The notes beneath the pieces are model-generated. The model did no database searches, was not told the DNA's origin, and saw only the letters and a list, made by a program, of their open reading frames with translations. This document shows positions 1 to 52,265 of a DNA stretch of 64,000 nucleotides, piece after piece. A program made the translations under genes and the position numbers. Every line of letters begins with the position of its first letter. Positions within the stretch are counted from its first letter, which is position 1. Source of the stretch: Bugula neritina (lineage: Eukaryota; Animalia; Bryozoa); contig OZ037772.1 of NCBI GenBank assembly GCA_964035545.1, forward strand, positions 7,920,889-7,984,888, in the 5' to 3' direction.

Positions 1-1985
1 AAATTAACCAGACTCACATCTGAAAACATCGGCAAGATAAAGTTTTCTTGACAAGTGGCTGTTGAGAATTGATCTTTAATCAAAAATGTAATTTTATGTT
101 TCAAGTTATAAATCATTTACTGAAGGGTTATCATATTTATGCTTATAAGCATTACACTTGGTCAATGTTTTCTAATTATTAAAGTGAACATCAGTTAAAG
201 CTATGAAGGACAAAAAGCAAGTGTCAACCACTATTGCGTCACAAAACAATTATTTTTACAAGAACATGTGCAATTTTGTTTACCTCCCAACGTCAATTTA
301 TAGATGGAAGTTTTTCCAGTAATAAAGAACCCAGAAGGAGACTTTGCCATGTGCATTGGTAACATCACCTTACACTTACTAATAGAATTTTCATAGTCAA
401 TGCCAGTTACTTCTGGAGAAGTACAGACAGAAGATACTTTGTTTTGGTTCAAATCAACCAATCGTATTGCGCTGTTTCCATAATCCGCCACCAAGATTAT
501 ATTATCTGTTATAAAAGTAATGTGCTTTGGGTTATCCACTTTAGAGATGTTGAGGAAGCCATCAGAGTATCCTGCACGATCAATGGAGAGAAGATATTTA
601 AACTTACTCCACTCCCCAAGCCGAAGAATCAAGACGTTGGTCTTGGTAGCCAGATAAAGTATTTTTAATGACAAGTTTATGACAAAACTGTGCACAGTCT
701 TTCTAAAAGAGGAGAGCGTAATGACATACCAAGTATAATCTCTAAAACAAAGACATTTGATTTTGCCAGCATTGTTATCGTATAAGTAGATCTCATTGGG
801 TTGGTTTGAGCGCCTCACCAGCTCTATAGGTTTCCCCAGCTTGGCGACATCAAACTTGCCGCCATTATCACCGTTATTTTTGCACCTCCCAGTTACGTAG
901 CTTGTTTTGTTGTTTTTGCGATCCAAGTCTCGTATGCAATGATTAGAATTGTCAGCAATCCATAAACGCCCATCTTCTCGGGGTGACGGAATAATTCCAG
1001 AAATAACACCGAATCTAGCTACAGAACCAGTTCCTTCCTTGTAACCATTAGATATCGAACTACCAGCTAACAGTTGGAAACTTTTAAATTCTTTGGTCGT
1101 ATATAAAGCAAATCCTGCAGCAAGTAGGTAATGACCTTCAACGTATGGGTCTTGTGTCATGTAGTTAAAATTGATATTGGCTTCAGCTTGTAAATCAGTT
1201 CTTGTGTATACTTGCTCTATACTCTCAAACTTTACACTGAAAATCGATTAGTCAAAACAAAATATTAATTTGAATTTTAAAAAAAAACTCGTCAAGCAAA
1301 TTTAACTACAATGCTTCAGTATAGTGTTCAAATATACCTGCAATATTGATACAGCATCACAGCATAAAACTCTATAAACAACAGAAGTTCTTAATGCATT
1401 AGAAATTAAACAATAAAAACTATTGCTTCAGTCAAATCAGCATTTAACAAACTAATGAGTATATGTACTATTGGATTGAAAAAAAGCTCATCCCTGCAAG
1501 AATTCTCTGATTTATAGCGCTTTTGTTAAATCCTGCTAAGACGTTGTGTTTACTAAGCCTTATGCTCTAACCCCTTATAGGCAATTTTTAGACTTACCAA
1601 CATTAATATTTACTGATATTATAAAATCTTCATGTGCCCCAACTCGTGGTAAGTTTTTATGACAAAAATTGTTCAGTTTTTCATTAATTCTCACAAGTAT
1701 TGATTTTGCCAATTAAATATTTTTTCATTGTGTCACACTTATTCTATTAAAGATGTTAATAATTAATTCATACCTTCCTATAGTGTTTGTGTAGCGGAAT
1801 TTTCCTTTTACTGGTAGTAGATTCTCTACTAACTGCAATCAACAAGAATTATTATATGAGAAAATCATAAAAGTTAGGAATCAATTGCCATTACTAGGAT
1901 AAAATGACACAAATTATTAAAGATAAAAAATTGTTATTATTCCAATGTTACTTACATATAATAAAAACACTAACTTTTTAATCAT
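1..1985 (-). CDS. Gene A: NHL-repeat-type beta-propeller surface protein (3' end runs off the window)
   Basis: Exons 1985-1956 (MIKKLVFLLY), 1832-1774 (59 nt), 1236-284 (propeller: GYKEG..ARFG, LWIADNSNHCIR, DG..VDNP, LVADYGNSAIRLVDL). A probable exon 4 starts at 19 (ttttcag|AT, DVSLVN...). All GT/AG, phases 0/2/1. Confidence 0.85.
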
Positions 1986-3815
1986 CACGCTTAGAATTTG
2001 CACTTGAACGGGCAGCATAAAATAGCAATCTGGTATGGATTCAGATTGAGGTTTTCTAAAACTAAAATTGAGATGAAGAAAATTTTATTATTTTGCACAG
2101 ATGCTAGTAAAAAATACTAAAAAGACATATTTAGAATTTTTTAAAAGTGATGAAATGCCTGCAAATTTATTTAAAACATTTTAAATAAATATTTAGCTCA
2201 ACACCAAAAAAGCAAAATTAGGCAGAAATAAAAATAGAATCAATTAAATTAGATTTTATATTACCATTATATGTATTTTATGAATACCTAAAAAATATCT
2301 TTGCTGATATTCTGCTATAACTAGATGGTGTTTATGATGCGGTGTCACAAAACTCTGGTAGCAGTGTGACGAGTTCAAAAAGTCTGGTAGTCAGAAGTGT
2401 AAAGACAAGTAGCAGACAACTTGCTAGTCTAGTTGAGAGTAAATAGAGTTGTGAATATAAGTAGAATACTTTTTCAGCAAGATATGCACAGATCAACTTA
2501 TGAAAAAGACCTGACTTTTACAAGTAAAGCATCTGCTTTTATACTAAATTCATAAGTCTAAAAAATGCTACCACATTCCACACCGTGCGCATGTCTCGTG
2601 TAGAAAAGGCAATATTCATTAGCCAATAAATAGTGACTAAGAATGTAAACAATTATTGCGCAATAATACTTGCATAGGCTTGTGTGCCACACTAATTATA
2701 AGTGTAAGCTAAATAACAAAAGAGAGTGATATGTACTATAATAATTTATAAAGTAGAATTTGTGGCATGCAGCAGAAGTTGAATTATTTGTCTAAATATT
2801 TTTTTTATGTAAAACATCCTAAATACTCATAGAAAATTTGGCATCTTTAAAAAAACTAATTATCTCAAAAATGTTCATAAAGCCACACCTTCCTGCTATG
2901 TAATTTTATGAGGTAAATCATTTTTTTAGTTTCTGAGATCAATCATGGAAATGAAAAGATTTAAAATCATCTGCATGTTTTTATAATTTCTAGAGACACA
3001 ATTTGAAGCATGGTTTTACGAGACACAACTTGGCTTTATCAAAGAACTACAGTTAATTTAATTAGAATCCAGGTAATTCTTTTTAATTATAATAATATTA
3101 TGATTGGTAAGGAAAAAACCATTTCAGGGCAGGAATTTATTGGTGCAAATATTAACCTGAAAATTAGTAGCTACATCAAATTTAAAAAATACTTTTTGTA
3201 TTTTAGTGTTTTTATAGCAATATGCTACTTTTGATTAACTTGAAACAATAGGGCTCAAAAATAGTTTTAGCATCATGCAACTAGTAATTTATTTTATACA
3301 AAAGCAGCTGTAAAATGTTATGTATAAAAGTATTGAATATCAAAGTGGGAGGTGCTCCGGCAATCTTTTTCACCTTGACCTTCAGATCCGACTTTAGCCT
3401 GCATATGACTGACTTTCTGATATTGACCCTGAAACTAAAAACACATGGCACTTATATTCAATTACAGTAGTATAAAAAGTGAAGTAAATTAGCAATCTCT
3501 TTCTGGTATAAAACTTACACTGCTGAGAAATTAAAAAAAGCAGGATTCCTGGTATTTTGTTTGAAACTGAGATTACCTTATAAAATCCAATAATTTTTAT
3601 GGTTAATAATAAATTTGTTTTCTTTTAAATGTGAGGTTTAGTTTCTTACATTCAGTGTTTGCTTTATAACTTGATGAATCATAGGGTTTTGGTGTCTTTG
3701 ATGTCTTCTTATTACGTTTTATCTTTTGGTCATATCTTCCAAGATTAGCTGCAAGACAAAAAGTTTACTTTTTAAAAATAAATACATAATATATGATATA
3801 ATATATATATTTTTT

Positions 3816-4162
3816 GTGTGCATGTGTGTGTGTGTGCGTGTGCCATGCATGCTTGCGTGTGTGTGTTTCGTGCGCGCGTTTGCGCGTGTGCGCGTGTGCA
3901 GGTGTGTGCAAGTGTGTGCGTGTGCGCGTATGCGCATGTGGGTGTGCGTGTGTGTGTGCGTGTGCCATGCATGCTTGCGTGTGTGTGTGTTTCGTGCGCG
4001 CGTTTGCGCGTGTGCAGGTGTGTGCAAGTGTGTGCGTGTGCGCGTATGCGCATGTGGGTGTGCGTGTGCGTGTGCGAGTGCGTGTGCGTGTGGGTGTGCG
4101 TGTGCGTGTGCGTGTGCGTGTGCGTGTGTGTGTGCGTGTGCGTGTGCGTGTGTGTGTGTGTG
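3816..4162. repeat. Compound (TG)/(CG) microsatellite with internal higher-order repeats
   Basis: GTGTGC/GTGCGT runs. The duplicated position (about 8785-8844) has only a short version. Confidence 0.95.
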
Positions 4163-4179
4163 TTAGTAATCTAGAAGGT

Positions 4180-6973
4180 TTAAACTGAAAACAGACCAGT
4201 TCCAGATCTCCAGAAATTAGACCTTCCATCTATAAATAGACCATTGGATTGAAAACTCTGAAATCTTCGTCTCCGTTTCTTTTTCTTTTTATGTTTTTTA
4301 GAACCTTTCTGTGACGCTGCAACACCAAGGCAGAAAGTATTGTATTCTTGAATAACCAAATTCTACTCCTTGAAATTTAAAGTTAATCAGCAAATTTTCT
4401 CACTCTTTTTAAGTCTCGTCAGTAAGACTGCAACTGGAATCGCCAGTAGAGCTAATAATATTCCTCCGCCAACATATAAGAGTGTTTTAGTGTGCTTGAT
4501 AAACCACTTGGCTACTGAACTGCCTCCAAGTTTTGTCTCACCCTGCTCTTCAACTGTGGAATTGCCATTCACCGTAGGTTGTGAATCTACAAAACCTTTT
4601 GCTTATAGCAATCTGTTTACTGCAGTTCAGCAGCCAGACAAACATTAGCTATGATTATAAAGTTTCTTGTTTACATAATATGTTTTTAGATTGATGCAAT
4701 TCTATTGAGATCAATTTTTTAAGCAGCTATTCATACTTTAAAAAAAAGTCTTGAGTCCTAGAGCACATCTTTTGCTGCGCTAAAGTGACAAATGTCCAAT
4801 CACGTAATTCTCTATTACATTTTATATAAAGAACTATTTTTTTCAAATATAAGTCATGTCTATGCTTTTGCTTTTCTGAACTATGACGTTTAAAATATAT
4901 AGCATCAATCACCTTAATTATATGACATTTTAAGTTATAAATCATTTACTGAAGGGTTATCATATTTATGCTTATAAGCATTTCACTTGGTCAATGTATT
5001 CTAATTAATTTATTGAACATCAGTTAAAGCTATGAAGTACAAAAAAGCAACCAATATTGTGTCACAAGAAAATAATTTTTGCAAGAACATGTGCAATTTT
5101 GTTTACCTCTCAACGTCAATTTATAGATAGAAGTTGTTCCAGTAATAAAGAACCCAGAAGGAGACCTTGCCATGTGCATTGGTAACATCACCTTACACTT
5201 ACTAATGGAATTTTCATAGTCAATGCCAGTTACTTCTGGAGAAGTACAGACAGAAGATACTTTTTTTTGGTTCAAATCAACCAATCGTATTGCGCTGTTC
5301 CCATAATCCGCCACCAAGATTATATTATCTGTTATAAAAGTAATGTGCTTTGGGTTATCTACTTTAGAGATGTTGAAGAAGCCATCAGAGTATCCTGTAC
5401 AATCAATGGAGAGAAGATATTTAAATTTACTCCACTCCCCAAGCCGAAGAATCAAGACGTTGGTATTGGTAGCCAGATAAAGTATTTTTAATGACAAGTT
5501 TATGACAAAACTGTGCACATTCTTTGTAAAAGAGGAGAGCGTAATGACATACCAAGAATGATCTCTAAAACAAAGACATTTGATTTTGCCAGCATTGTTA
5601 TCGTATAAATAGATCTCATTGGGTTGGTTTGAGCGGCTCACCAGCTCAATAGGTTTTCCCAGCTTCGCGACATCAAACTTGCCGCCAATATCATCGCTAT
5701 TTTCGCACTCCCCAGTCACGTAGCTTGTTTTGTTGTTTTTGCGATCCAAGTCTCGTATGCAATGATTAGAGTTATCCGCAATCCATAAATGCCCATACTC
5801 TCGGGGTGACGGAATGATTCCAGAAATAACACCGAATCTAGCTACAGAACCAGTTCCTTCTTTGTAACCATTAGATATTGAACTACCAGCTAACAGTTGG
5901 AAACGTTTAAATTCTTTGGTCGTATATAAAGCAAATCCTGCAGTAAGTAGATAATGACCTTCGACATCTGGATCTTGGGTCATGTAGTTAAAATTGATAT
6001 TGGCTTCGACTTCTTGCTTCGTTCTTGTGTATACTTGCTCTATACTCTCAAACTTTATACTGAAACCCAATTAGTCAAAACAAAATAGTAAGTTAAATTT
6101 TGAAAAAAAAACTCAACAAGCAAATTTAACCACAATGCTTCAGTATAGTGTTCAAATATACCAGCGATATTGATAGAGCATCACAGCATAAAACTCTAAC
6201 AACAGAAGTTCTTAATGCATTAGAAATTAAACCATAAAAGGTATTGTTTCATTCAAATCAGCTTTCAATAAAATAATGAGTAAACATAATATTAGATTTA
6301 AAATAAACTAATGTAAATTTATAGTAACTATTTCTGTGATCATTCCTTGACAGAAAAGGGTTTCTGTTAAATCGAGCGGGGTAATTTTTCAAATGGGGCA
6401 CAGGAGTAATTATGACTGAATGCTGTTTTTAGCATTACCAATTGCTTGCAGAAGGTTTGAGCCCATGACATTTTGTTTGCTAACCCTTACACTCTAACCC
6501 CTTATAGGCCACGGCAGCTCATCTTTAAAATAAAAGGCAGTGCCGAATAGTTGTGGAATAACAATTAACCTATTGTAATTTCACTAAAACTAATATTTTC
6601 TGATATTAAAAAATCTTTATGTGCTCCAACTTGTTGTGAGTTATAGTGACAAATGTGGCTCAGGTTTCTACTGATCCTAACAGGTCATGATCTTGCCAAC
6701 TAAGTGTTTTTTCATTGTGTCATACTTATTCTATTAAAGATGTTAATAATTAATCCATACCTTCCTATGGTGTTTGAATAGTGGAATTTTCCTATTACTG
6801 GTAGTAGAATCTCTACTAACTGCAACCAACAAAAATTATTTTATGAGAAAATTGTAGAAGTTAGGAATCGATTGCCATTACTAAGATAAAATGACACAAA
6901 TTATTAAAGATAAAAAAATTGTTATTATTCCAATGTTACTTACATATAATAAAAACACTAACATTTTAGTCAT
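4180..6973 (-). CDS. Gene B: type I membrane NHL-propeller receptor, ~453 aa (A/C chimera)
   Basis: Exons 6973-6944, 6819-6761, 6059-5107, 4586-4404 (stalk + TM LLYVGGGILLALLAIPVAVLL), 4316-4180 (KKHKKKKKRRRR...GLFSV*). Total 1362 nt, in frame. Confidence 0.88.
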
Positions 6974-8860: not shown

Positions 8861-11798
8861 TCAAACTAAAAACAGACCAGTTCCAGATTTCCAGAAATTA
8901 GACCTTCCATCTCCAAATAGACCATTGGATTGAAAACTCTGAAATCTTCGTCGCCGTTTCTTTTTCTTTTTCTGTTTTTTAGAACCTTTCTGTGTTGCTG
9001 CAACAACAAGGCAGAAAATATTATATCCTTGGATTACCAAATTTCAATCCTTAAAATTTAAAGTTAATCAGCAAAATTTCTCACTCTTTTCAAGTCTCGT
9101 AAGTAAGACTGCAACTGGAATCGCCAGTAGAGCTAATAATATTCCTCCGCCAACATATAAGAGTGTTTTAGTGTGCTTGATAAACCACTTGGCTACTGAA
9201 CTGCCTCCAAGTTTTGTCTCACCCTGCTCTTCAACTGTGGAATTGCCATTCACCGTAGTTTTTGGATCTACAAAACTGTTTGCTTATAGCAATCTGTTTA
9301 CTGCAGTTCAGCAGCCAGACAGACATTAGCTCTGATTATAAAGTTTCTTGTTTACATAAGTTTTTAGATTTATTCTAATGAATTGAGATTAAAATTTTTA
9401 CACAACCGCTTATACTTTAACACAAGTCTCAAGTAGTAGAGCGCATTTTTTTTGCTTCAAATTGCATGTGTTCAATTACATAATCCCCTATAATATTTTA
9501 CATGAAAAAAAAATTTTAAATAAAAATTATATCTATTTTCTTGCTTTTCTGAACTATGACATTTAAAATATGTAGTATCATAATTGTTCATTTTATACAG
9601 CTCCACAGTTGCTTTTCATGCCATGCTACGGCGCCAAACAAAATATTAATACCGAACTTGACAACTTGAGAATTTGTTTAATTTTTCAATTTTTAGATAT
9701 TAAGGGAGAAGCAGTGATAATCTAGGAGTTTGAGCATTAACTTAATTAACACATATAGTAAATTGTTCAATCATCATGAAATTTCATTGGTGATTTTAAT
9801 AAAGAGATCTAGTCATGTAAGTTCTCCTTTACCAAAATAGAGAACTACTTTAATGAGGCTTTACCGTCAAAGGTGCTCACATGGATGTCGGCTATAAAAA
9901 AACTATAGTTTGTTTATTAGATATTCAGCAAAATGCTGTTATTAATAGACACTTGCGTTTTACCTACCTCTGTACTTCATGACTGAGATGGCATCTTTAC
10001 CTATTATATAAATACTTGACATGTCATCTGAGAGCAATAGATCCACTGGCTGAAATAGCGCGCAATCCTTTATAGAGTTTCCAGTCTTGCCTAATTTTGC
10101 TACAGATGGAATGCATATAGAATAAACCTTTGAGTTTTTTAAATCAACTAATCTCAAAATTTCATTGTCTCTGTCAGCCACCAAAAACAGATCATTTGAA
10201 AGAAAGCGTATAGCCATCGGTGATGCAAACAACGCGTCGGCTAAGGATCCATCGTTATGCCCGCTGGTGCCTCTATTAGCAACAACTTTCGCTCCGTGTT
10301 TCCAGGGCTTTGCCGAGAACTTAGAAATGCCATTTGCATGTGTAAAGTATAAAAACTCTCCTTCTTGGTCAAAGGCTAAACCATTTACGCTCCCCGTATA
10401 TTTAACGATGCTAACTACTCGCCAAGCACCATCCTCTTTGCAGACACATTTCAGTGTGTTGCAGCCATTGTCAAAAAAGTATATTTCATATTCTGAATTT
10501 GGCCTGTATACTAAATCAAACGGGAAGCAGAGCTCGCTGGTCAGAAGATCTGAGTCCCAGTTACCTCGAGTAGTGCAAGTTCCTACCACACGTGACGTAG
10601 AATTTTGTACCCGGTTTACACTTCTCAAACAAGCATTACTGTGATCTGCCAGCCACACCTCTCTTGTTTGATGGAGTGGAGAAAGGATTCCCGTTATTGC
10701 TCCAAATTTTGCTTTATCCCCATGAGCCTCAGAATAACCCCCGTTTAGAATATTTCCAGCAATAAGATCAAAGCTTGTAAAATCCCTGGTAGTATACAAC
10801 GCAGACCCCAGAACTATTAAATAGTTCCCTTCAACGTAGCCATCTTTAGCAACTTTTCTAAACCACTTTTTTGACTCAATGTAATCTTTTCTACGTTCAT
10901 ATATTTCTGTTACTTCGTTAAAGTTGAAACTGAAAAAAAATTAACGAGTTTCAATCTAAAGCAAATAAACTTAAGTTTATCTGCCATAAAAATATGTCTA
11001 AAGAAAATTTAGATTTAAATATACTAAAAGACTTGAGACATTATTTTTAGATTAAATCACTTTTCAAAGCAAGAGAACAGCCTTTTCTGTGTAAACAAAA
11101 AGTTATAATCACGTTTGCAACCTTTAGCTTTGAATTAGTTACATATATTAGGATATATTTTATCTGCTGCTGTAATTATAGTGAATAGCTTTAATTATCA
11201 GGTATTTTAACTAAAAAAGTTTATTCAAGTCTACAAACAAAAAACTCTATTTTTCTTAGTTGGATTGTGCTCTACTCAACTTTGCATTTCATAGGTATAT
11301 CAACCCATCTACCAGAATGTAATTAGGTATATCTCACTTTATACATACACCTATAAGGTGTACTCACCCTGAAACATTGGTTGCATATATGACTTCGCTT
11401 TTGCCAAGAGAGAATGCTACACAGAGCTAAAACAAATGTATAAATTGAATCTATATTGAGAAAATTCACATTAAACTGCCAAGTGCTATCATGGCCTTTT
11501 CAAGATATCAAATTATATATATATCAAACAACCATTTTTAAAACATACTGTTCCGATTTGGGATTTGCTTTTAAATTTAAGTTTTTTTATGTTGTCACCT
11601 TGTTTTATTTAGCATGGGTAACCTTAGTTTTCTAAATGATCAAAGATGTGGTACTAAAATTAGTATTCATGTTAGGGGTCATTAGGCATAAAAACTGATA
11701 ATTAAGTATAACTACTTTTGTGTTACAAAAAAAACCAAGTGTCTAATTATCTGAAAAGTACATAAACTCACTTGAATCAGTTCAAATATTAATTCCAT
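8861..11798 (-). CDS. Gene C: type I membrane NHL-propeller receptor, ~455 aa
   Basis: Exons 11798-11772 (MELIFELIQ), 11426-11368 (59 nt), 10929-9968 (VWLADHSNACLR, HNDGSLADALFASP, LVADRDNEILRLVDL), 9267-9085 (TM), 8997-8861 (polybasic tail, GLFLV*). Total 1368 nt, in frame. Confidence 0.87.
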
Positions 11799-12581: not shown

Positions 12582-17365
<4,784 letters not shown>

Positions 17366-18356: not shown

Positions 18357-20187
18357 TCATACAAAGTTAACTGTTAGGCTCTTTAAACTAAAGTAGAAGA
18401 CAATGATCAGGTATGGCGTAGACAGCATCAACTTTGAACTGCAGCTGACTCGTAAAGTTGTTGTCTCTACTACGACAACTCTCTCTGCTAAAATACAAGA
18501 TTTGTTTCTTGAAAATAAATAAACGAGATAAATTTTTTTAAGAACTTTTTTTTATTGTGGAAAAAAGTAGTCAGTAGAGTAATTTTCTCATTTATTCCTT
18601 TCTAATAGCATTACTAGCTTGTACAAATTTCATGCAGTCACTATTCCTGTGAGACTCTATGATGAAACATGTATTTTAAAGTGAACTAACTACTTGTTTT
18701 CTTTATCATTACTGCCAATGACTATGTGTTTACTAGGCCAGTACTCTCATGGTTGCCAGGGTAATATATTTATGATGTTTGTCATGCATTCAACATAATT
18801 GCAGTTATTAGTAAACATACAAACACAATCACCCCATGCGAGGAGAATTTGGTATATTACCAGATTGACAACTTTGTACTGACATTCTGATTAAATCATA
18901 TGTGATATATGTTTTATACTTTAGTTCACTCGCTTGTCATAAAGAAAGTTATTCAAAACCTGTCCGTGATGAATAAAAAGAAATTTGGATATTTTGGAAA
19001 CATATTTGAATTATAGACTTTGTAAAGTTGGCGAAGCTCTTAGACCACATGCATGTAATAAAATATGATCAGTCAGAGTACAAAGTGAAAAAATAAAATA
19101 TTTAATGATTTTGTTACTGAAGATATATTTTACCTTTTAGAGTCAAGAGGTAATATGAGCTTGAGCCGAAAATAGCGATAGATAATTCATCTTGCTTGAA
19201 GAAAAAAGTTGGTTCAGCAATTTTGCATTCGTCGACATTTCCATCTATATCTTCAGTTATATTGGTTCGTGGAACGCATACAGTTGATATCTTATTATCT
19301 TGCAAATTAATAAGTCTAAGAACATTATTTCCATAGTCGGCAATAAAAAACATATAATTGGACAGAAAGAGCATATGTTGAGGATCTTGTAATGCCGCAT
19401 TGTCTAACTTGCCATCATTGTGACCATCATTTGGAGAAATTATAATATCTATGCCATCTTGCCATGATGATTTCATTCTGAGTAAACCATTGTCAGTTGT
19501 GGTCGCATACAAAAAATGTTCAGCTACATCAAAAGATATATAATTTACGGGCATGTCCAATTGGAGCAAAGTTACAACTTTCCATTCACCTCCAATAAGG
19601 CATAGACATCGTAAGGATGTTTCAAAGTTGTCGAAAAATACCAGCTCAGCTTTGCTAAATTTTCTTGATAACAACTGCTTTGGCTCACCAATTAATGCAT
19701 TTAAAAATGTACCATCCCTGCTTCCGCATTCCGTGCACTTTCCAGCAACCAAAGTGAAGCTGTAGCTCTGTAAATCAAACTCTTGAACACAGCAATTATC
19801 AACACTCAAGAACCAAATACGGTTGGGATCTATAGGTGAGACGATCCAACCGGTTACGTTCCTAAGATCATCATTGTCATAAGTTTGATTGTTTCCAAGC
19901 AGATCAAATGTAAGAAAGTTCATAGTTCTAAATATCCTCTCATTTTTTATCACTAAGTTGGCATTCGGTGTGGTAGGGTCTGCCATGACCTGCTCAATTT
20001 GATCTTCAGATATCTTATTTACGCTGTCAATTTTGATGCTAAAATCAAATGTTCAAAATGCATTATAAAATTGACAAAAACAGATATAAATAAAAATATA
20101 AATATAAATACAAATATAATTATAGAACAATTAAAAAAGTAATGTTCAGCATACTGTAAGCAGCAATTTGAAATAGATTTCATAATG

Positions 20188-33399: not shown

Positions 33400-33403
<4 letters not shown>

Positions 33404-33462: not shown

Positions 33463-33466
<4 letters not shown>

Positions 33467-36600: not shown

Positions 36601-38060
36601 TCTAATTTGACTAACTCTAATAATTCCATTAAGCCTGAAGCAGCAATAGCGTCTAGTTGGATTGACCAGAATAAAGACACAATAGTATATGCTGTCGTAG
36701 GAGCTGGGGGCATCGGGTTTATGGCATCTATGCTCTACGTGTTTCACGTATACCAAAACAGTAGGAACTTAACCAGATATTAATTGTAACCAAAAATACA
36801 TGAATAAATAATTAGTTTTTAAGTAAGCAAAGTATTATTTTTTACTTGTTTTGAAACATAAAGCAGTTGCAAACAAAGTGAAATTTTAAAATTTCATTGG
36901 TTTATTCATTTTATGAGGCAAGCTTCTTTTCACTTGTTTCTTTTTTTAAATCATTCTATTACAATTTCAATCTCAAGTTTGAATTTCAGATGTTTTACAC
37001 ATTGTCTTTACTATCAAATTCATTTATTCAAGCTTGTGTTTGTGGTTCCATGCGTGCTTTAATCACATGTATCTTATCTTTTTTTTAAATTAAGCCATTT
37101 TTCTTATATATTTCACTAGTATTTAGTTGAAACTTTAATTTTAGGAGCAATTACAACATCCATTTATTATCATCCTTTACCTTTGAGTAATACAATATAA
37201 AATGTGATTTTTGGACAACTGCTCTATTTTTTTAGGTGAGAAAACAGACGATAGTCTGAGTGACACAAGATCAAAGCGCAGCGGTGAGAATGTCTTAGTT
37301 GTTGCCTGTTATACTCTACACTACTCTACTCTACTCTACCCTACTCCACTCCACTCTACTCTACTCTACTCTACTCTACCCTACTCCACTCCACTCTACT
37401 CTACTCTACTCTACTCTACTCTACTCTACTCTACTCTACTCTACTCTACTCTACTCTACTCTAATCTACTCTACTCTACTCTACTCTACTCTACTCTACT
37501 CTACTCCACTCCACTCCACTCCACTCCACTCCACTCCACTCCACTCCACTCCACTCCACTCCACTCCACTCCACTCTACTCTACTCTACTCTACTCTACT
37601 CTACTCTACTCTACTCTACACTACTCTACTCTACTCTACTCTACTCTACTCTACTCTACTCTACTCCACTCCACTCCACTCCACTTCACTCCACTCCACT
37701 CCACTCCACTCCACTCTACTCTATACTACTCTACTCTGCACTACTCTACACTATTCTGCACTACTTTACACTACTCTGCACTACTCTACACTACTCTGCA
37801 CTACTCTACACTACTCTACTCTGCACTACTCTACACTACTCTGCACTACTCTACTCTACTCTACTCTACTCTACTCTACTCTACTCTACTCTACTCTACT
37901 CTACTCTACTCTACTCTACTCTACTCTACTCTACTCTACTCTATGCCCAATGTATTTTGTTGTAGATAAAGCCAGCATTGGTTCATCTCACAGTTATGGA
38001 AGCAAGCATAAGAAACACAAAAAATCTAAACATCACAAATCAAAAAATTCCATTCTCTAA
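33661..38060 (+). CDS. Gene H: type I membrane NHL-propeller receptor, ~483 aa
   Basis: Exons 33661-33702 (MKSNCLSVALFLLL), 34611-34663, 35067-36019 (propeller), 36500-36760 (N-sequon-rich stalk + TM), 37236-37283, 37966-38060 (KHKKHKKSKHHKSKNSIL*). Total 1452 nt, in frame. Confidence 0.87.
37313..37942. repeat. (CTACT/CCACT)n pentanucleotide satellite, intronic
   Basis: Fills gene H intron 5. Confidence 0.97.
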
Positions 38061-38915: not shown

Positions 38916-41900
38916 ATGGACACAGATAACATATACTTCACTTTATCTATGACAGTTCTTTTAGTGAGTACATACCAAGTAGATGATGAAGTATGAATGC
39001 AGAGCTAAATTATTCATGTCGCCATTTTTCAACAAATTTCACTTGAACTTATTTTTCAATTTTTTGTTCAGATTACATATCTTCAAAAACTAAAACCAAA
39101 ATAAAACTCAAAAAGCTTTACTATTTTCACTATATTTGTAATAATTTTGTTATTTTTCTCAAATTTCACTTAGACTTTTTTATTTCTGTTTGTTTATTTG
39201 AATATTTTTGTACTAGGTATATGTTGAAAAAAGTTCTGCTATAGATGTGGAAATTTTTGAAGAGGAGATACAAGGGTAGGGAAATAATTCTGTCATTCTT
39301 TGAAATTTTACAATTTAATTTTTCTTTTAAAGCATCCTTTGGTGAATAAAACTAACTATAGCTAAAATCATGACAAACTTTGCATTCAAAAAGTTATATC
39401 TTTTGGAAAAAAACATTTAAATAACTTTACAATATATTTTTATAGGAAAAATTATAAAAGATTGTGATACTTAGTATTTTAATAACTAGTTTAATAACTA
39501 ATTCATAAAGAGCCTTTTATCTTTAGCATTATGATTTCATGGTGTTGCTTTGGCCTTGGTTTGATTAAATAGTTCTTGATGATTTCATAGTAAGCAACCA
39601 CTCATAATGAGTAAATTAATTTGGTTGTACTAATAATATGTACCTAATTATGTGTACTTTGATTGTGTAGAATCAAGTTTGACACCCTTTCGATTCTTCG
39701 ACAAGGCCAGACAACTTCCACTGCAGATATAACGGCGAGCCAGTTCAAATATATAACACCAGACAAGAGAGAGTATGGTAGATTCTTTCTGGTTGATCAG
39801 TGTGCGATATACCTATTCAACTCTGTGTCTAAAGAGACCACCCATGTAGTTGGCAGCAAACAAGTATGCGGTAACAGCGATGGAGTTGGTATAGCCGCGA
39901 GGTTCAGAACTATAGAATGTCTGTTTGTGTCTCCAGTGAACAAGAGCATTATCTGGATATTGGACTCAGGCAATCACTGTATCAAACAAGCAAATGTAGT
40001 AAGCAAGTCAGTCAAAAGCTTTGCAGGTTATTGCGGTCATAAGGGAGATCTGGATGGCCCCGTTTTGAAATCTATATTGGCAAATCCCAAGGTTATGACT
40101 CAGAATCCTCAAAATAACGAAGAAGCTTATTTCTACGACAACGATTACTACTCGATAAAAAAGTTATTTCTGAATATTGAAACGGGCACATGGTACATAC
40201 AGACATTAGCAACTTGGTCTCAACCCATTCTGGGAATATCCTTTGACCTCTCGGGTTCATTTATTTACTTAGCACACACAAGTGGATTATCTCGTATAGA
40301 TGTCAGTACGCTCTATATTGAAGACATCATTTTAGGCAATGGTCTGGGAAACAATGACGGCTCGTTGGAAGAAGCTAGCGTTTACAACGCAGGTCACATG
40401 ATCTTTCTTCATAATGACATCTTTATTATGTTAGACAGTAGTAACGCTAAGATTAGAGTAGTTAATCTTCAGTCTGGGATGATAACTTCCATATGTTTAG
40501 TACAGCTGAGAGAACCCTATGAGTTTGTGCCTGGCACTATAGACACCTGCAAGATGGGAAAACCAACTGGATTGACCCAACTTAAGGCTGAGACTGAAGG
40601 CGGGCAGAATTATTTTATTATTAGTTCTTACACCGCTCTTTACCAGCTATCATACACAGGTAAGTTTATTGTCCTAAATCACATAATCAAAGCAAATGGT
40701 TTTAAGATTTGGAGTAACTAAGTAATATATTATTTTTATTAAACTTTGAAAAAAGTTTGAAAAATTGAAATTTTGGACAGAGCTTTAAACAAAAAGCTTT
40801 CTTGCTATTTAATAGCCATATTGTTTATAATTAAAATTAATACCATTGTTGAAATAGTTTGAAGAAAGATACATATAATTTTGATAAGTTTGTCAGTCTG
40901 AGTTATTTGAATTTGAATATTTAAGGTAACAATAATTGTCAAGCATAAAATTTCTACTTAAAATTTTGAAATTTTGCATTTGAAATGTTTTTCTAGCTTT
41001 TCACATATGAAAATATATTACATCTTATTTTTTGCTAGGATCTTTTCAATCTGAAATATCAACAACCACCACAGACTCATCTTTGTTTGCCTTCATCAGA
41101 GACAAGGACTCTCCTCTGGGTAACTGGTTTTTATCCAATGGCATGACGCTGCTGTACTCTACAATTGGCATTGCTGTTTTTGGAATGATGGCAGCAGCCC
41201 TATACTACTTTAATAGGTCGGCTCCAGGTACGAATCCCGTTCAGTAAATTATACTCCATTTCAAACGTTCATATTTATATGGGCAAATACTCATTATATA
41301 AAAAAATCTCACGCACGATTATATTCACTATTCCTGTGAGAAACCCCTGATGGAAAGGGTTTTTATTAAAGTGCGCTAAGGACTTATTTTAATGGGGCAC
41401 AAGAGCAACTATGAGTGGATGATCTTCCTAACATCACCAATATCCTTTGTTGGGGTTCGAACCCATGACCTTCGTGTTTACTAGGCAAACACTCTAACCC
41501 CTAGACCACTGCTTCTCCTTAAGAGTTCAAACCCTAGGAGGTAGTTAAAAATATAATGTAGCAGTACATACCCGACAGATGAAGGTCAAACAAAGCTGCT
41601 GTGTTTATATAGTCAGTAGGTAAAGCTTGAAGCAATACTCTCTCTACATCTCTGTAGTTCTTCTCCCTGAAACTATAGCAAGAAATCTATTGTACCAAAA
41701 CATATAATTCTTATCTATGAATTAGTTAGGTTTTTAAGTAGTTTAGTTTTAGCATCTATATTAATAAATATTACCTGCGTGAGAATTGAAAACTTAAACT
41801 GAAAAGTTGAGAGGTATGGCTATAAAATGTTAAAGGCTCATTCTAATTCTAATTCTCTTGTTTACTAAGCAAACACTTTAAATACTAGACCACGGCTGCT

Positions 41901-42414: not shown

Positions 42415-42497
<83 letters not shown>

Positions 42498-44137: not shown

Positions 44138-47100
44138 ATGTTAACTCTGCTTGCTTGGACTTTAACTGCAGCTGTAAGTAGAACCTTATGTGAGTGTTTG
44201 CTAATCAATATATACAAGCGGTTACAAATAACTTAACATGTTATAGGTATAAGTATGAGATTATTTATGCAAACATTAAAAATATGTATATTTATATAAA
44301 CAGGAGTAGTATACTAATTGATGTAGCCAAGTCAATAAATAAGTAGGGAAAATACAATTTTGTTAGAACTCTTTGCAGTAAGAGATGATCAGTTAAAAAT
44401 AGGTTCATACAAGTTAAAACATGCTAACACATGTTCAACCATGCTATCAGACTTTCAAACAAGTTCAAACATGCCCAAACATATTTCGAAATATTCAAGC
44501 ATGCTAGTTTATTTTGCAAGTTTAAACATGCTGAAACCTGTTTACTGGTGTCTGAAAAAGCACTCAATTTTATATAAAGATGTTCAAATAATTTGACATT
44601 ATAAGTATAGTTGTATGATTCAGAGAGACATGATTCTTATGTATAAATTGAAATTTACAGGAGTAGCACGCTAAGATGTAATCTATTCAACAAATTTCTA
44701 GAAAAAATAAAATCTTCATAAAGTTTTTTGTAGTTTAATCATGCCTGTATTTGTTGGAGCATGCCCTCATCTGTTCAAACAAGTTCAGACATGTCTAAAC
44801 ATGCCCAAACATGCCCATGTGTTCTATATATGTCTAAACATGCATTGACACTTATTTACCAGTGTCTGCAGATGCACTCAATTCTATGTATGCAAGTTCA
44901 CACATTTTCTCACAGTGCACTTGTTATCAATTGTAATTCAACGTAATAGAATATGTGATCAAACATGCCCTACATGTTGATACTTTGTATGATAACTACA
45001 AGAAAAAACTTTTTGTACCATTTATCAAAGCAGTAAAATATGCTGATATATGCATTTAAACATTTACTCTAAATATTTCTTTTTGTTTATTCATATGTCA
45101 TTTTTAGATATATTTCTTATGCCGAAGCCATGCAGAATCTATATTTAAAGATAATGTCCAAGGGTCTGTACATATTATAAAAAAGAATGTTTTATGACAG
45201 CTTGTATTTTAAAAATTGAAGTGCTTAATTTAAAAACTATTGCAGTGAAAGTTCTTAGACTAAACTAGGTTCATAGGACATTACTTCATATTTTGTAATG
45301 TTTAAAAATTAACCTTAGTCTATTGCACTACAAAAATTAATAAGAAAACATTTTAATTTTAGAGCTTGTTCTGATACAAAAAGCAACTATTGTCAATTGG
45401 TAAAAATTGCAATTAATTTTATTAATTTTTTTCAGGTTTTTGTTTGGCAACAAAACTTTAATTTACAACCTAACTGCACATTATTCATCAACCAATGACT
45501 TTCCAGTGTTTACAAGCATGATAGCAGACCCATTTCACAGCGCCCAGTACTTGTTAGCAAGTCGGTGTAGCATCTACAATCTCAACACACTAGACACAAC
45601 TCTGACACTCATAGCAGGTGACAGTTCTTGTGGTTACAAAGACTCCGTGGCTACATCAGCTCTATTCAATGGCATTACTCATCTGGTTCCTTCACCAGAA
45701 GAGCCAGGCCAAATCTGGATTTTAGACTCAGACAATAATTGCATAAGAACTCTTGATCTTATTATCGTTGAAGTTCAGACATTTGCGGGACTGTGTAAAG
45801 TGATGGCGAACAGTGATGGGGTTGCAGCTGCTGCTAGATTCGGCAAGCCTGTGGCTTTGAGTGTGAATCCCAAAAATTCGTCACAATCAGTGTTATATGA
45901 CAATAAGTATTTGGTGCTGAAACATCTGTACTTTGACTCTGAGACTAATGAATGGATTGTAGAGACTTATCTAAGTTGGGAGGAAAAATGCAGAGGGTTA
46001 ACATATGATCCATCTGCCAACTATATCTACTTGGTTTACTCTACTGGGATAGGTCGGGTGAGGCTTGATAATGGAACGGTTGAGTATAATACAGGTCATA
46101 ATGGCATTGGCCAGATGGATGGTGGCGCAGACACTGCAAGTTTTTATAATGCAAGAAATATTCTGTTTCTCCAAGACAGCTTATATCTAGTAGTTGATTA
46201 TGGAAACTATAGATTAAGAATTGTAGATGCATACAATGAGACAATTTCATCTCTCTGCGTAGTTTCCAAAGTCGTAAGCCAAACTGAGACTATTTGTGTT
46301 GATGAACAGCCAACTTTTATGTCAGCACATCATACTACAGAAGATAAACTAGCTATTCTTACTGTTTCTAATGTCTACGAGTTAGATCTTACAGGTTGGG
46401 ATTGTATTATGCTAGTCACATATCTACATTTTTTGAGCATAAGCCTACATACAACTGCATCCATGGGTACTGGCGGAAACTTCAGCATAAGTAAACTTTT
46501 TAGATGGTTTTGTGCATAGTAAACAGAAACATACTAACTGATCTATTGTGCTTTGTTTCATAGGATTTTTAACTCATAATGCGGATTAGGATGTGCTATT
46601 AAAACTAGATAAATATACTACAAATAGCTTTTGACATTATTTTAAACTGTATTTTCCAGTTCTGTTAGCTTTGGAAACAAATCTTTCTACCTCAGCAGAA
46701 TTTAATGACACACTGGATCTTCTGGCTGCCAGAATACAAGCAACAGTAGACAATTTTGCTGGCAGCAAAAAAGATCATTTATTATATGGAATAACGGCAG
46801 CACTCTCGGCTTTAATAATCAGCTTAGTTGTACTTATTGTCATGTCTGGGCATAGTTGTGAGTTTAATTATTCAACAATTTTGTTTCTAATAAGCAAAGC
46901 AAATCTATTTTCTTATTTATTATTAGTTCACAACAAAAGGTTTGGCTCTTTCATTATTGTGAAAACAGGCATAACAGGAAACTTATCTAAACTATTATAA
47001 CTTCCTTTATTGAAAGCATCTAGAAAACACCCTTGAAATTTTTTTTAAAAATTGATGAATTTTGTGCACTTTCACCAACTCACTTGAAAATATTTTATAT

Positions 47101-48519: not shown

Positions 48520-51500
48520 TCATTTCTTGGATCGCCTTTTATTTTTTTTGCGTTTCTTGTGAGAACCTCGGCTAGAAAAGCTTGGACTTCCTAAAACAAA
48601 CATTTATCAATATATTTTTATTATAACTCAATAGTATAAACTGAGCAACATTAAAATAGCATTACAACAGTGCTAATACTACATATCAGTATAAGCAACA
48701 TTGCTGTAATTTTACCAACATTACTGTAGTGGTAAGTTCTAAAATTATAATTCAGTTAAATAAACCATTGCCAAGCTCTACATTTAAAACTTACCATGCC
48801 TATGACCTAGACTTCCACTAGCAATAGACGGTGGTCGTCTTTTATAAATATCTAAAATTTAAAATGTTAAAAATTAGCTGCTTTCAGAAAAAAAAAGAAT
48901 GTTCAAATTTTAGCGGTAGAGATATTAGCTGCAATTTCATTTTAATTGATAGTTGCAATATCATGTAAATTTATGTTTTATCATGTAGTATGCTGGTTTT
49001 TATGTCATGGTAATTTTAATCTCCGTATGATTAAACGCATATTTCAGAAAGTAAACATAAGCATTCGATAAATTCAAATGCACCAATTTCCTTTTATGCC
49101 AAAATTACAAATTAAAATTCTATGTGACAACTTCAACATTGAATGACAAAATAAAAATAAAACATCTTGAGAGAACTAATATATAATATTTTTTTAAAAT
49201 AGCAAAACCATGGTTAGCCTGTGTTTCATGATAATTAATTGTTTTGGAAATATGCAAACGCATAAACTAAATCGTAAATAAGATTGGGAACTGAATGAAT
49301 TCAAAGGCTAGCTTTGACCTACTATAAGCATAATGTAATTTATGACTTTTCATTGCTTGCTGCTATAAAATATACCAGAAATGGGAAGCAGCCGTGGTCT
49401 AGGGGTTAAAGGGTTTGGCTTAGTAATTATGAAGTCATTGGTTTAGGCCCACGAAAAACCACCGGTGGTGTTAGGAAAAGCACCCAGTCACAATTGCTCT
49501 TTTGCTACATCTGAATAAGTCCTTACTTAGCTCAATTTAAAAAGATTTAGCATCAGGGGTTTTTCACAGGGATAGTCACCTTTGGTTACCTTTCACCGCG
49601 GTTATTGTGTGCTGGAGTGACTGTAAACTTGCGAGAGTTTTTTATAATGCACGAGAAATACAAGCTAATTATTTCTGAAATAAAAGATGTCCCTTGGTGG
49701 TTTGGAAAATCTTACTGGGTGGTCATATATACAAACATTACTATGTGGCCATATATATAAGACTCACTAGGTGGTCATATATACAACAACATTACTATGT
49801 GGTCACAATATAATATACAAAACTTACTTGGTGGTCTGCTGGTAAAGTATACAACTACAAAAATAATGAATAAACAGGCCAGGCCAATTCCTCCATATAA
49901 ATAAGAGCTTTGACTAGAGGAGTTATCTGACAACCCAGAAAGATCTGTCGTGTTTGTAGAGTTTCCAATCCAATCTGTTGTACTCAGTAACATGGTTGTC
50001 TCAAACACTCCATTTCTTGTCGTCTTTTTTATGGTTGGATTTGGTGCCTTAGTGGTGCGTTTCGTTGTTGTCGGCTTTTTAGTAGTAGTAGTAGTAGTAG
50101 TTGTTGGTGTAGTAGTTGTGGTTGTTGTTGTAGTAGTTGTAGTTGTTGTTGTAGTAGTTGTGGTTGTTGTTGTAGTAGTTGTGGTTGTAGTAATTTCTAA
50201 ACAAAAGTAGTTACAAATCAAAATAATCCTTATACAACTTTTACTATAAAAAACACCTACTCGAAAGTTTTTTGTTATTGATTTGCAGTTCACAACTCAA
50301 TAAAATAATTAATTATAAAACTTTCACATACTTGAATAGCCAATGTGGTAGATATAGTTTCCTGTTACTACGTATAGTCCGCCATCTTTTCGTGTACTAA
50401 CTGTAATTGAGCGTGGTTTCTTCATGTGGCAATAGTTGATTGGACCAGGTACAAAAAGTTCAGCATGCTCAGTCTGATACCGGCAAATGGAATAAACGTT
50501 TCTGGTAGAGATGTCAAACACCCGGATTATTGAGTTGGTATAATCAGCTATCACAAACAAATCATCTGTTATAAAAGCAAGGTCTAATAATAAAGAAGCT
50601 GAAGCATCGGCAAATGGACCGTCATTGTACCCATAGTCCGGTTCTATGATAAGAAACTCTGTCTTGTTGGTCTTCATGTTAATTCTTTCAATACTTTTTT
50701 CATATGCCATGTACAAATAGTTAGCAGATAAATCAAACGCCATCCCCCTAGTGTCTAGCTTCCAATCTTTTGCTGTAGCAAGGAACCAAAAGTCATACGC
50801 CCCATTGTCAGTAAAATGCCAGATGTGTTTGAGTTTTCTCTGCCCTGTGTCATAGAAATAGAATTTCTGGCAGGTGCGTTCAGTGCAACTGGTCTTGTAA
50901 TGAATCAAATAATCTGGACTCCTTAAAAGGGAATTCTTCATTGTTCCATCTTTCTCGCCAGCTTTTCCACAATTGAACATGAACCTACGGTTGGTTGAAT
51001 TAGTCGTTCTGTCAAACTCTCGGAAACAGTGGTTTCCGGAATCTGTCAACCACAAAAGAGAAGCGTTGTCTGGTGACTGGATGGCACCAGTCAAGACACT
51101 GAATCTTGGATCCTTGCCATCTCTGTGTCGACAGTCACCTTCTTTACCTCCAAGGTGATCCAGGCGATCTATCAGTGGGTTGTATGTATACAATGCACAC
51201 CTAGTCGTAATGAGATAATTGCCGTTTATCTGTGGATCTGGTTTAATTGAATGCATGACAGGCGTATCACTGACTATATTTAAATGTCTTAGAAGTTTCA
51301 AAGAACCAAATTCATATCTAAAAATAAATTTAAAAAAGATTGTTTTTAATAGCATCTATGTTATAGAATTTATATTTATTGATGTACTACTGTGAGTCAA
51401 ATGAAGATTAATTGTTTTTGACATTTTTTGTGTTTTGTATTCTGTATAAAATTTCAAATTGTATAATTTTCCAATTCTTTGCGGTTACTAGAGCTTGAAA

Positions 51501-52265
51501 TATGCATGTTTTTATAATTGCAAAAATATAAATGCAAATAATTTTAGCTACAATTTAAAACATAAAATAAACACAATAAAATATTTAAAACTTAGTTTTG
51601 TAACTACTGTTAATCAAATAGAAACTACTTATAAATAAGATTAGTTTAATAATATAAAGTTATAGGTTTATTACATAAAATAAAAAAGTATCTTGGTATT
51701 TAACTCTGCAATAATTTAAGCTTACCCCTGAATTTTTGTCTTAAAGATTTGCCTGTCTTGTGCAAAGCAAACTGCAGAAAACATCTACAGGTCAAATATT
51801 TTTATATATTAGATAAAAAACACAATAAAATATTTTAGGAAGTATATTTACTAAAACAGAGACATCATATAAGACACATTCTATTCTTTTCAATTTAGTT
51901 TATGTTTATAAATTTAGGCAATATACTATTTTTATGCAGATTTTGCAAAATCCTACTTTAAATATACTCATACTATGCACTTTAAAAGATTTTTTTTTAT
52001 TAATAATACCCATAGTTTTACCATGCAGTTACTTTGGTAGGTAAAGGTTTTACAGAGATGACTATATAAAAGTTCATGATAAAAAGTTATACAATTATAT
52101 ATTCTCAAATTGAGAAATATTTAACAACAAAGTATGTGCTCAAACATAAAAATTTATTATTTTATATATAACATATATTTTTTAAATGATCAAGAAATAC
52201 ATAATCAGAGTTGTGAATCTTACTTGAGTTATGCACAGTGCCAAGGACATCACAGGTGTAATCAT
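48520..52265 (-). CDS. Gene K: type I membrane NHL-propeller receptor with poly-Thr stalk, ~527 aa
   Basis: Exons 52265-52224 (MITPVMSLALCITQ), 51784-51726 (59 nt), 51317-50332 (propeller), 50196-49828 (poly-T stalk + TM), 48851-48795, 48590-48520 (HKKRKKNKRRSKK*). Total 1584 nt, in frame. Confidence 0.87.
49383..49638 (+). mobile_element. tRNA-Thr-derived SINE
   Basis: GGGAAGCAGCCGTGGTCTAGGGGTTA..TAGTAA..GGTGTTAGGAAAAGCACCCAGTCA..AAACTTGCGAGAG. Confidence 0.82.

Follow-up and report, generated by a model that had tools for sequence, protein, structure and literature searches.

The 64,000-nt stretch of the Bugula neritina genome analysed here (the window, to whose numbering all positions refer) carries an array of paralogous genes, A to K, that an initial annotation took for a birth-and-death family of receptors for microbe or self/non-self recognition, raising the question of whether the array is a fast-evolving recognition locus or something more stable. 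The host is a colonial, spermcasting animal, and we know of no molecular description of a recognition or surface-receptor repertoire from any bryozoan.

Gene structure and predicted topology

The propeller frames of all 11 genes are open in the ORF listing at the positions first reported. In every gene the propeller is encoded by one exon of ~950 nt (length 3n+2), entered in phase 2 and left in phase 1, and an upstream mini-exon of ~59 nt carries the end of a predicted signal peptide, in line with the initial reading of 11 tandem genes that each combine a signal peptide with a propeller. A short exon 1 encoding Met and hydrophobic residues could be placed in A, B, C, G, H, I, J and K; that of F may form a single exon with exon 2, and searches for exon 1 of D and E returned none. 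Signal peptides and transmembrane (TM) helices were called from hydrophobicity and splice logic, on gene models derived from genomic sequence. The exons are listed below, with evidence in brackets; the sibling lineage used for comparison is GCA_010799875.2.

1956-1985, minus: A exon 1, candidate
1774..1832, minus: A exon 2, signal-peptide mini-exon
284..1236, minus: A exon 3, NHL propeller, 953 nt, phase 2 in, phase 1 out (ORF, splice sites, Pfam 27.5 bits)
1..13, minus: A stalk and TM exon, 5' edge only in the window; the exon extends 241 nt before the window start
6944-6973, minus: B exon 1
6761..6819, minus: B exon 2
5107..6059, minus: B exon 3, NHL propeller, 92% identical to A (ORF, splice sites)
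4390..4602, minus: B stalk, TM and short tail exon, open frame, sharing 90% identity with its counterpart in C
11772-11798, minus: C exon 1, candidate
11368..11426, minus: C exon 2
9968..10929, minus: C exon 3, NHL propeller (ORF, splice sites)
9071..9283, minus: C stalk and TM exon, open frame
16824..16882, minus: D exon 2, candidate
14232..15178, minus: D exon 3, the most degenerate propeller, blade 4/5 motifs lost (ORF, alignment, splice sites)
20323..20387, minus: E exon 2, candidate
19134..20038, minus: E exon 3, NHL propeller (ORF, splice sites)
18360..18484, minus: E last exon, uncertain candidate, weak C-terminal hydrophobic stretch
25795..25898, minus: F signal-peptide exon; exon 2 covers 25795-25853 and may be joined to exon 1 from the ATG at 25898
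24525..25486, minus: F exon 3, NHL propeller (ORF, splice sites; ortholog dN/dS 0.20)
22728..23114, minus: F stalk and TM exon, basic, Ser-rich tail of 75 residues (acceptor)
33014-33046, minus: G exon 1, candidate
31879..31937, minus: G exon 2
29913..30874, minus: G exon 3, NHL propeller (ORF, splice sites; ortholog 87% identical in amino acids, dN/dS 0.16)
27320..27556, minus: G Thr-rich stalk and TM exon
33661..33702, plus: H exon 1, Met and 13 residues, GTAAGT donor kept in the sibling lineage
34611..34663, plus: H exon 2, mini-exon, 90% conserved in the sibling lineage
35067..36019, plus: H exon 3, NHL propeller, the modelled copy (ORF, splice sites, AF2)
36493..36780, plus: H stalk and TM exon, N-glycan-rich (splice also in NCBI model P0001)
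38916..38963, plus: I exon 1, candidate (conserved block)
39217-39275, plus: I exon 2 (conserved block)
39671..40659, plus: I exon 3, NHL propeller, the most conserved (95% in amino acids, dN/dS 0.08)
41011..41244, plus: I stalk and TM exon
44138..44173, plus: J exon 1, candidate (conserved block)
45108-45163, plus: J exon 2 (conserved block)
45436..46394, plus: J exon 3, NHL propeller (ortholog 89% in amino acids, dN/dS 0.14)
46635..46997, plus: J stalk and TM exon
52224-52265, minus: K exon 1, candidate
51726..51784, minus: K exon 2
50332..51317, minus: K exon 3, NHL propeller (ORF, splice sites)
49778..50296, minus: K stalk and TM exon, poly-Thr, mucin-like

The first exons of G and H are divergently arranged, with ~600 nt between them.

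Eight genes (B, C, F, G, H, I, J and K) have clear stalk and TM exons inside the window, and a ninth is A, whose TM exon straddles the window start just as the initial annotation had it running off the edge. The ten assembled anchors claimed there are thus clear for the eight genes named, but weak for E, where the last-exon candidate is only slightly hydrophobic at its C-terminus (GPI-like or a tail-less TM), and an anchor exon for D was not detected. Each TM/tail exon ends in its own stop, the exons are mutually unrelated except between B and C and, weakly, H and I, and no signalling domain was recognised in the cytoplasmic tails. The donors of H exons 1 and 2 are kept in the sibling lineage, where an independent NCBI gene model (P0001) also contains the H propeller-to-TM splice. 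Together, the gene models support products that would enter the secretory pathway as single-pass (type I) membrane proteins with an NHL ectodomain.

Extent of the family and fold of the head

In the Darwin Tree of Life assembly of Bugula neritina, chromosome 8 carries at least 60 members of the family as a tandem array spanning 440 kb (C8:7.583-8.026 Mb), with a further 6 at C8:8.71-8.73 Mb, so the 11 genes are a slice of a larger tandem cluster rather than a self-contained locus. In-frame stops occur in ~10% of family matches, and TRIM-type copies on C2 and C7 match the family profile weakly, over part of its length (E 1e-15 to 1e-37). The 11 propellers are 25-35% identical over their whole length, apart from the A/B pair at 92%, and the median terminal branch of the paralogs is 0.5 substitutions per site. 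A Trp, four Cys, a Pro, an Asp and a Tyr are invariant, together with the scaffold motifs that the initial annotation had pointed out, and its picture of a shared scaffold with loops that differ widely in all but A and B stands. So does its view that the family is undescribed: the searchable literature yielded no account of a Bugula neritina NHL-propeller surface family, and the combination of signal peptide, NHL head and TM segment in a large gene set was found neither among named database proteins nor in the literature searched. The family is so far known from the Bugula neritina species complex only.

An AF2 model of the gene H propeller (pLDDT 93.1, pTM 0.90) has 22 strands in six blades, arguing against a non-propeller fold, the alternative that structure prediction might have revealed. 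Foldseek placed the model closest to the NHL domains of SOQ1 and NHLRC2 (TM 0.79 to 7djk and 6gc1, E 4e-12), and an Atlas structure search returned NHL and TEN_NHL propeller clusters at TM 0.80-0.85 and rmsd 2.1-2.6 Å. The family profile likewise matched NHLRC2 (E 5e-19) and SOQ1 (2e-17). Pfam NHL (PF01436) exceeded its cut-off of 20 bits in A (27.5), B (25.1) and H (24.9), lay below threshold in C, F, J and K and had no match in D, E, G or I; it was the sole Pfam family detected in the 11 genes. The head is therefore a canonical six-bladed NHL propeller, nearest to the NHL domains of NHLRC2, SOQ1 and teneurin type, which two conserved disulfide pairs would brace.

Old paralogs under purifying selection

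One contig of the sibling lineage, which lies at a dS of 0.35-0.48, carries F, G, H, I and J in collinear order. For eight window genes dN/dS against that lineage was 0.08-0.42 at dS 0.26-0.48, a pairwise measure in which positive selection at few sites could go undetected; seven genes fall at 0.08-0.21 (among them A, 0.17 to ortholog P0025, and E, 0.18 to P0052) and H at 0.32-0.42. Each of 26 public family proteins, which are ORF calls on genomic contigs, has one clear ortholog in this assembly at 72-94% identity. Public alleles of seven members differ by 0-2.5% in amino acids within 90% clusters, a clustering that would hide more divergent alleles. Loop variability is equal on both faces of the propeller, with faces set by strand-order convention rather than coordinates. 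Paralog divergence thus reflects old age under purifying selection, not fast diversification.

One duplication in the window is recent. A and B are separated by a dS of 0.13, compared with 0.47 to the sibling lineage, which places their duplication after the split from that lineage and makes them the sole post-split duplicate within the window, and the region downstream of B is 87% identical to that downstream of C; B is a chimera of an A head and a C tail. Gene birth and exchange of domains do occur at A and B, in keeping with part of the birth-and-death label given to the family at first, but rapid diversification was not seen, and "hyper-divergent" in the sense of rapid change does not agree with a collinear array, low dN/dS and the lack of a variable face. 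One-to-one conserved orthologs, proposed initially as an outcome that would speak against a recognition locus, do exist, but not as members of a known family.

An allelic split at gene H

A 2-kb block of H differs by ~9-11% between the two haplotypes of the sequenced colony, compared with at most ~1% in the covered upstream stretches. The block spans exon 1 into the first half of the propeller exon (the first ~500 nt of exon 3) and holds 13 amino-acid changes in 122 codons, at an N:S of 13:8, below the neutral expectation. No paralog in the assembly matches the divergent haplotype, and the divergence amounts to more than half of what separates this genome from the sibling lineage. The same block could also have arisen by introgression among cryptic B. 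neritina species. In the sibling lineage H carries a frameshift, suggesting that H is dispensable. Observed at one gene in one colony, the split is the sole observation pointing to a putative immune or allorecognition role; a divergence of ~10% would be more in keeping with a recognition gene that is polymorphic than with an ordinary conserved receptor. With both haplotype assemblies public, it offers a concrete lead that is cheap to test.

Interpretation and alternatives

Ancient paralogs, together with one-to-one orthologs under purifying selection, argue for a stable set of different surface binding heads, and we consider it probable that the family is an old repertoire in which type I membrane glycoproteins present distinct NHL binding heads. 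Each protein would begin with a signal peptide whose coding sequence is divided between two very short exons, followed by the single-exon propeller, then a Ser/Thr- or N-glycan-rich, presumably glycosylated stalk, and would close with one TM helix and a mostly short, non-homologous cytoplasmic tail. The propeller would serve as a ligand-binding head on the cell surface, and signalling may proceed via partners rather than the short tails. Such an array would have more in common with sets of chemoreceptors or adhesion receptors than with a fast-turnover immune family. Two members sit poorly with a stable repertoire: D, which lacks an anchor and has lost blade motifs, and E, whose anchor is weak.

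An innate immune repertoire of pattern-recognition proteins, whose propellers would bind microbial surfaces (for example of epibionts or the Endobugula symbiont) and so set off defence or the management of symbionts, seems to us unlikely. In its favour, the family is a large, tandem, lineage-restricted set of surface proteins with divergent heads, and among the closest relatives of the fold are NHL proteins of bacteria that sit on the cell surface or bind nutrients. Yet gene turnover is low, with one-to-one orthologs across dS ~0.4, dN/dS lies well under 1, a hypervariable face is absent and the tails bear no recognisable signalling domain. Rapidly evolving immune expansions show turnover specific to a lineage and a binding surface under positive selection; apart from the A/B duplication, neither was seen in the window genes relative to the sibling lineage.

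The H split bears on two related readings. That the supercluster is a self/non-self complex built on the NHL fold, with most members conserved and some, such as H, holding ancient balanced alleles, is quite unlikely in our judgement. A complex for allorecognition or gamete compatibility, in which allele-specific propeller interactions would decide colony fusion or allosperm acceptance, strikes us as distinctly improbable: it would suit a clustered surface-protein family in a colonial, spermcasting host, and the deeply split H block, with its many amino-acid changes and no matching paralog, speaks for it, but the N:S ratio of that block, its observation at one gene in one colony, its possible origin by introgression, the frameshifted sibling copy, the conserved orthologs and the small differences between public alleles of seven members, within 90% clusters, all weigh against it.

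Membrane-tethered six-bladed propeller enzymes (lactonase, arylesterase or PAL-like) in place of receptors are very unlikely. Although the Atlas neighbours bear SGL and arylesterase annotations beside NHL, PF08450, PF01731 and PF03088 (SGL, arylesterase and strictosidine synthase) were unmatched at E<=1 in 11/11 genes, the invariant residues are structural (Trp, Cys, Pro, Tyr and the blade-motif Asp) with no conserved metal-binding set in the sequence columns, and 60-fold diversification at 25-35% identity would be unusual for a single activity. That the array is mostly decaying or unexpressed duplicated DNA, whose open frames lack function, is hardly credible despite the degenerate D and the in-frame stops elsewhere in the family, since dN/dS of 0.08-0.21 in seven genes over dS ~0.4 requires selection on the protein, and all 11 propeller frames are open with splice sites and phases conserved.

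Comparison with known systems

Sea urchin TLRs and snail FREPs are rapidly evolving expansions, whereas the Bugula genes have one-to-one orthologs across dS ~0.4. Hydractinia Alr and the clustered protocadherins are likewise clustered single-pass surface proteins with diversified ectodomains, on an Ig or cadherin fold. Alr genes owe their definition to extreme differences between alleles that go with fusion phenotypes, and determinants of the Alr1/2 or fuhc type have exceptionally polymorphic ectodomains; the alleles observed here are the public ones, 0-2.5% apart within 90% clusters, and those of the H split in one colony. In protocadherin clusters variable exons are spliced to shared constant exons, whereas each Bugula gene has its own, largely unrelated TM/tail exon, and a protocadherin-type locus was rejected on that ground.

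TRIM-NHL proteins (Brat, TRIM71, TRIM2/3) share the fold, but are cytosolic RING/B-box E3 ligases with a C-terminal propeller; the Bugula genes have no RING, B-box or coiled coil, and encode a predicted signal peptide, Cys pairs without variation and a TM segment instead, which sets aside TRIM-NHL identity. The Bacteroides "auxiliary nutrient binding proteins" BT_3476 and BACOVA_00264 (3hrp) use surface NHL propellers as binding modules (Foldseek TM 0.70-0.72) and form the clusters that lie closest in language-model features, but are lipoproteins of bacteria in which an Ig-like domain stands at the N-terminus. No sign of recent transfer from bacteria was found: eukaryotic NHLRC2 scores higher, and the Bugula genes have spliceosomal introns with conserved phases.

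Teneurins also carry an extracellular NHL propeller on a membrane protein (structural neighbour 9ifo and TEN_NHL-annotated clusters), and their NHL domain is implicated in homophilic adhesion specificity. They are type II proteins of ~2,500 residues with EGF repeats, a YD shell and a toxin-like (Tox-GHH) C-terminus, all absent here, and the orientation is opposite. PF25021 (TEN_NHL) had no match at E<=1 in the 11 genes; with NHL the only Pfam family, signal-peptide exons before the propeller and stalk and TM directly after it, teneurin identity was rejected.

Should the ligands prove to be microbial, conspecific or settlement cues, the cluster would offer a genetic handle on symbiont management, colony and gamete recognition or larval settlement, the last of relevance for a major fouling organism. 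The best matches in both sequence and structure are NHLRC2 and the plant protein SOQ1, which have six blades and the blade motif G..DG....A.F..P ... AD..N..IR in common with the Bugula heads. In these single-copy genes the propeller follows a thioredoxin-like domain, whereas in Bugula it forms an N-terminal ectodomain behind a signal peptide, followed by stalk and TM segment, in at least 60 tandem copies, placing the NHL propeller at the head of a large germline-encoded set of predicted type I surface glycoproteins.

Architecture of the NHL-propeller genes

An ORF scan recovered eleven long open frames (279-370 codons) at the positions assigned by the initial annotation, in a window that is AT-rich (32% G+C), and alignment of the encoded proteins A-K bore out its scaffold motifs. 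Aligned end to end, the proteins shared 25-35% identity, with the exception of A and B (92%), and retained invariant W, P, D and Y columns and four invariant cysteines in addition to the scaffold motifs. The NHL repeat was the sole Pfam family detected: A, B and H scored above the curated cut-off, C, F, J and K scored below it, and D, E, G and I gave no Pfam NHL match. An AlphaFold2 model of the gene H domain, calculated from an input alignment of 29 family members, displayed 22 strands arranged as six blades with a mean pLDDT of 93.1 and a pTM of 0.90. The nearest structures in a Foldseek search were the NHL domains of SOQ1 and human NHLRC2 (TM 0.79, E ~1e-11), an Atlas structure search returned NHL/TEN_NHL clusters at TM 0.80-0.85 and 2.1-2.6 Å, and a family profile matched NHLRC2 among PDB sequences (E 5e-19). 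The model together with these matches therefore confirms the NHL propeller assignment made from sequence.

In 11/11 genes the propeller exon (905-989 nt, always of length 3n+2) opens at an AG acceptor with one common frame offset and closes at a GT donor placed after the first base of a codon. Each is preceded, also in 11/11, by a ~59-nt mini-exon that runs from phase 0 to phase 2 and codes for the last part of a hydrophobic stretch followed by a small-residue cleavage-like site. An even shorter first exon, encoding Met plus 9-15 mostly hydrophobic residues and ending in a GTAAGT-like donor, was located in A, B, C, G, H, I, J and K; the two exons may be fused in F, and none was found for D and E. 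A one-exon signal peptide model failed, and the two-exon model suits all genes. Both small exons of H and their donors are kept in the sibling lineage represented by the other Bugula neritina assembly, GCA_010799875.2. G (minus strand) and H (plus strand) have their candidate first exons head to head within 33014-33702, ~600 nt apart, which suggests a shared bidirectional promoter where the array switches orientation.

Downstream of the propeller, B, C, F, G, H, I, J and K carry an exon encoding a Thr/Ser-rich or N-glycan-rich stalk (poly-Thr in K), a predicted transmembrane (TM) helix of 19-23 hydrophobic residues and a predicted tail of mostly 10-25 residues (75 in F). The membrane anchors previously proposed for ten genes are thus clear in B, C and F-K, and the corresponding exon of A spans the window start; E has a weak candidate only, a C-terminal hydrophobic exon, and for D nothing convincing emerged when the DNA was scanned for hydrophobicity and for exons in the right phase, or compared with the TM exons of the other genes. 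For H, the propeller-to-stalk splice recurs in P0001, an independent NCBI gene model for the sibling lineage. Apart from B/C (90%) and, weakly, H/I, no two paralogs have related stalk/TM exons. The TM-exon tails of the window genes showed no canonical ITIM or ITAM, and the few YxN/YxxI strings there are not more frequent than expected in an AT-rich genome.

A profile search of the whole assembly gave at least 122 matches, including 60 full-length matches at 7.583-8.026 Mb of chromosome C8, about one per 7 kb, with six more at 8.71-8.73 Mb of C8 and one on chromosome C3; weaker partial matches on chromosomes C2 and C7 seem to belong to other NHL families. The window itself occupies C8:7,920,889-7,984,888. 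Word-based homolog searches returned almost no match outside Bugula, a result that does not show the taxonomic range to be narrow, and no description of such a family was found in the literature searched. These data support a large, previously undescribed family of type I membrane glycoproteins whose head is an NHL propeller.

Repeats and a neighboring open frame

Several other elements were recorded in the window. The ~210-bp interspersed repeat is MITE/SINE-like, occurs in both orientations and is also found several times in the sibling-lineage contig L031. The two microsatellites translate as poly-Thr/Leu/Val or STLLY repeats and so produce long spurious ORFs; the one at 41490-42450 is absent from the sibling lineage. 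The Ser-rich frame, matched at 76% identity by a counterpart in public Bugula contigs, served as a divergence baseline.

Repeats and additional open frame in the window
6302-6520, 24199-24338, 28305-28516, 29536-29753, 41303-41518, 49381-49575, 53990-54211, 58725-58926, 60253-60463: copies of the ~210-bp repeat
15791-16680: four tandem copies of a 271-bp unit between candidate exon 2 and exon 3 of D (intron minisatellite)
37211-38060: long trinucleotide/pentanucleotide-type microsatellite after the TM exon of H
41490-42450: microsatellite of the same type after the TM exon of I
61607-62743, plus strand: 378-codon Ser-rich open frame outside the NHL array, no Pfam family

Orthologs in a sibling lineage and tempo of evolution

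The nearest public sequences were the older assembly GCA_010799875.2 and Logan/JGI contigs of Bugula samples. Family proteins in the Logan/JGI ORF calls cannot be taken as transcripts, as their frames run from intron into exon, so they are genomic and unspliced. Non-coding DNA differs by 13-25% between the window assembly and GCA_010799875.2 and the SRR40200xx contigs, and dS between the two assemblies, both labelled Bugula neritina, is 0.35-0.48. Background identity measures 81% in DNA immediately flanking the array and 84-87% around a chromosome-3 member not linked to it; the two assemblies therefore represent sibling lineages rather than one population, and must be different members of a cryptic species complex, as which Bugula neritina is known (PMC11480708).

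A 21-kb piece of a sibling contig is collinear with 25-47 kb of the window, where it supplies a one-to-one ortholog for every gene from F to J. Among public family proteins, 26 distinct ones could each be paired with a single clear partner in this genome at 72-94% identity, with a next-best match usually below 47%. Nei-Gojobori dN/dS ratios of window genes against their orthologs, with dS of 0.26-0.48 over the pairs, were low.

dN/dS between window genes and orthologs
I: 0.08
J: 0.14
G: 0.16
A: 0.17
E: 0.18
F: 0.20
B: 0.21
H: 0.32-0.42, highest in the set

In a maximum-likelihood tree of 68 family members, the median terminal branch was 0.52 substitutions per site (0.5-1.0 for the window genes), physical neighbors tended to cluster together, and young pairs were few. 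The A/B duplication (dS 0.13) is later than the lineage split. Across public samples, alleles of seven members were 0-8 residues apart, although 90% clustering would mask deeper alleles. Taken together, these observations support a family that is old, mostly stable and under purifying selection, a pattern that argues against the rapid birth-and-death diversification implied by the initial annotation; one-to-one orthologs and dN/dS of 0.08-0.42 do not bear it out.

A single hypervariable propeller face was likewise rejected. With faces set by strand order, paralog column entropy rose from 1.85 bits in strands to 2.3-2.5 bits whichever loop class was taken, and orthologs differed by 11% in strands and by 15-21% across all classes of loop; the loop classes are thus alike in both measures, leaving no hypervariable face.

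A head and tail of different origin in gene B

In the comparison of 1161-6070 with 6071-10929, the propeller exon of B is 92% identical to that of A, and the TM exon of A differs from that of B. The 3.3 kb downstream of the B propeller, including its stalk/TM exon, is ~87% identical to the region downstream of C. B is a chimera with the head of A and the tail of C, which implies that unequal crossover shuffled heads and tails.

Two divergent alleles of gene H

Over 29,900-35,899, contigs of a sequencing run that carries no RNA label and has the character of deep DNA sequencing of the same colony represented two haplotypes at ~70-80x each. The difference counts below come from filtered records, with coverage partly by one contig only.

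Differences between the H haplotypes
33,616 to ~35,570, from exon 1 of H through the first half of the propeller exon: 105 substitutions over ~1.24 kb of alignment, most pieces at 9-11%
33817-34529: 711-bp indel
~2.9 kb upstream of the H block: 9 listed differences, ~1% in the single piece scored and no more than ~1% over the covered stretches
Last 330 bp of the compared stretch: none among the listed differences

Codons 54-175 of the H exon hold 13 nonsynonymous and 8 synonymous changes among those listed. The contig total of the run, 309 Mb against 216 Mb, suggests, as a rough estimate, genome-wide heterozygosity near 1%. The alternate contigs are neither a paralog nor a conversion tract: a second copy or paralog of the H block is absent from the assembly, the block includes introns, and derived states are evenly split, with the sibling lineage matching the reference allele at 15 of the listed sites and the alternate allele at 15 others. 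From this 15/15 split, the alleles are therefore independent old lineages. The sibling ortholog of H (L031:9454-10435) is open only with a frame shift near L031:10025-10029, reflecting either a pseudogene or an assembly indel.

Possible roles of the array

The array fits a repertoire of distinct binding specificities, whose members may act as receptors or adhesion molecules, and immune and allorecognition roles are possible. A polymorphic recognition role for members such as H is also possible, the H alleles being the sole observation that favors it; introgression among cryptic species would explain these alleles equally simply. After SOQ1 and NHLRC2, the next Foldseek neighbors of the H propeller are a teneurin-like protein, surface NHL proteins of Bacteroides, and TRIM71.
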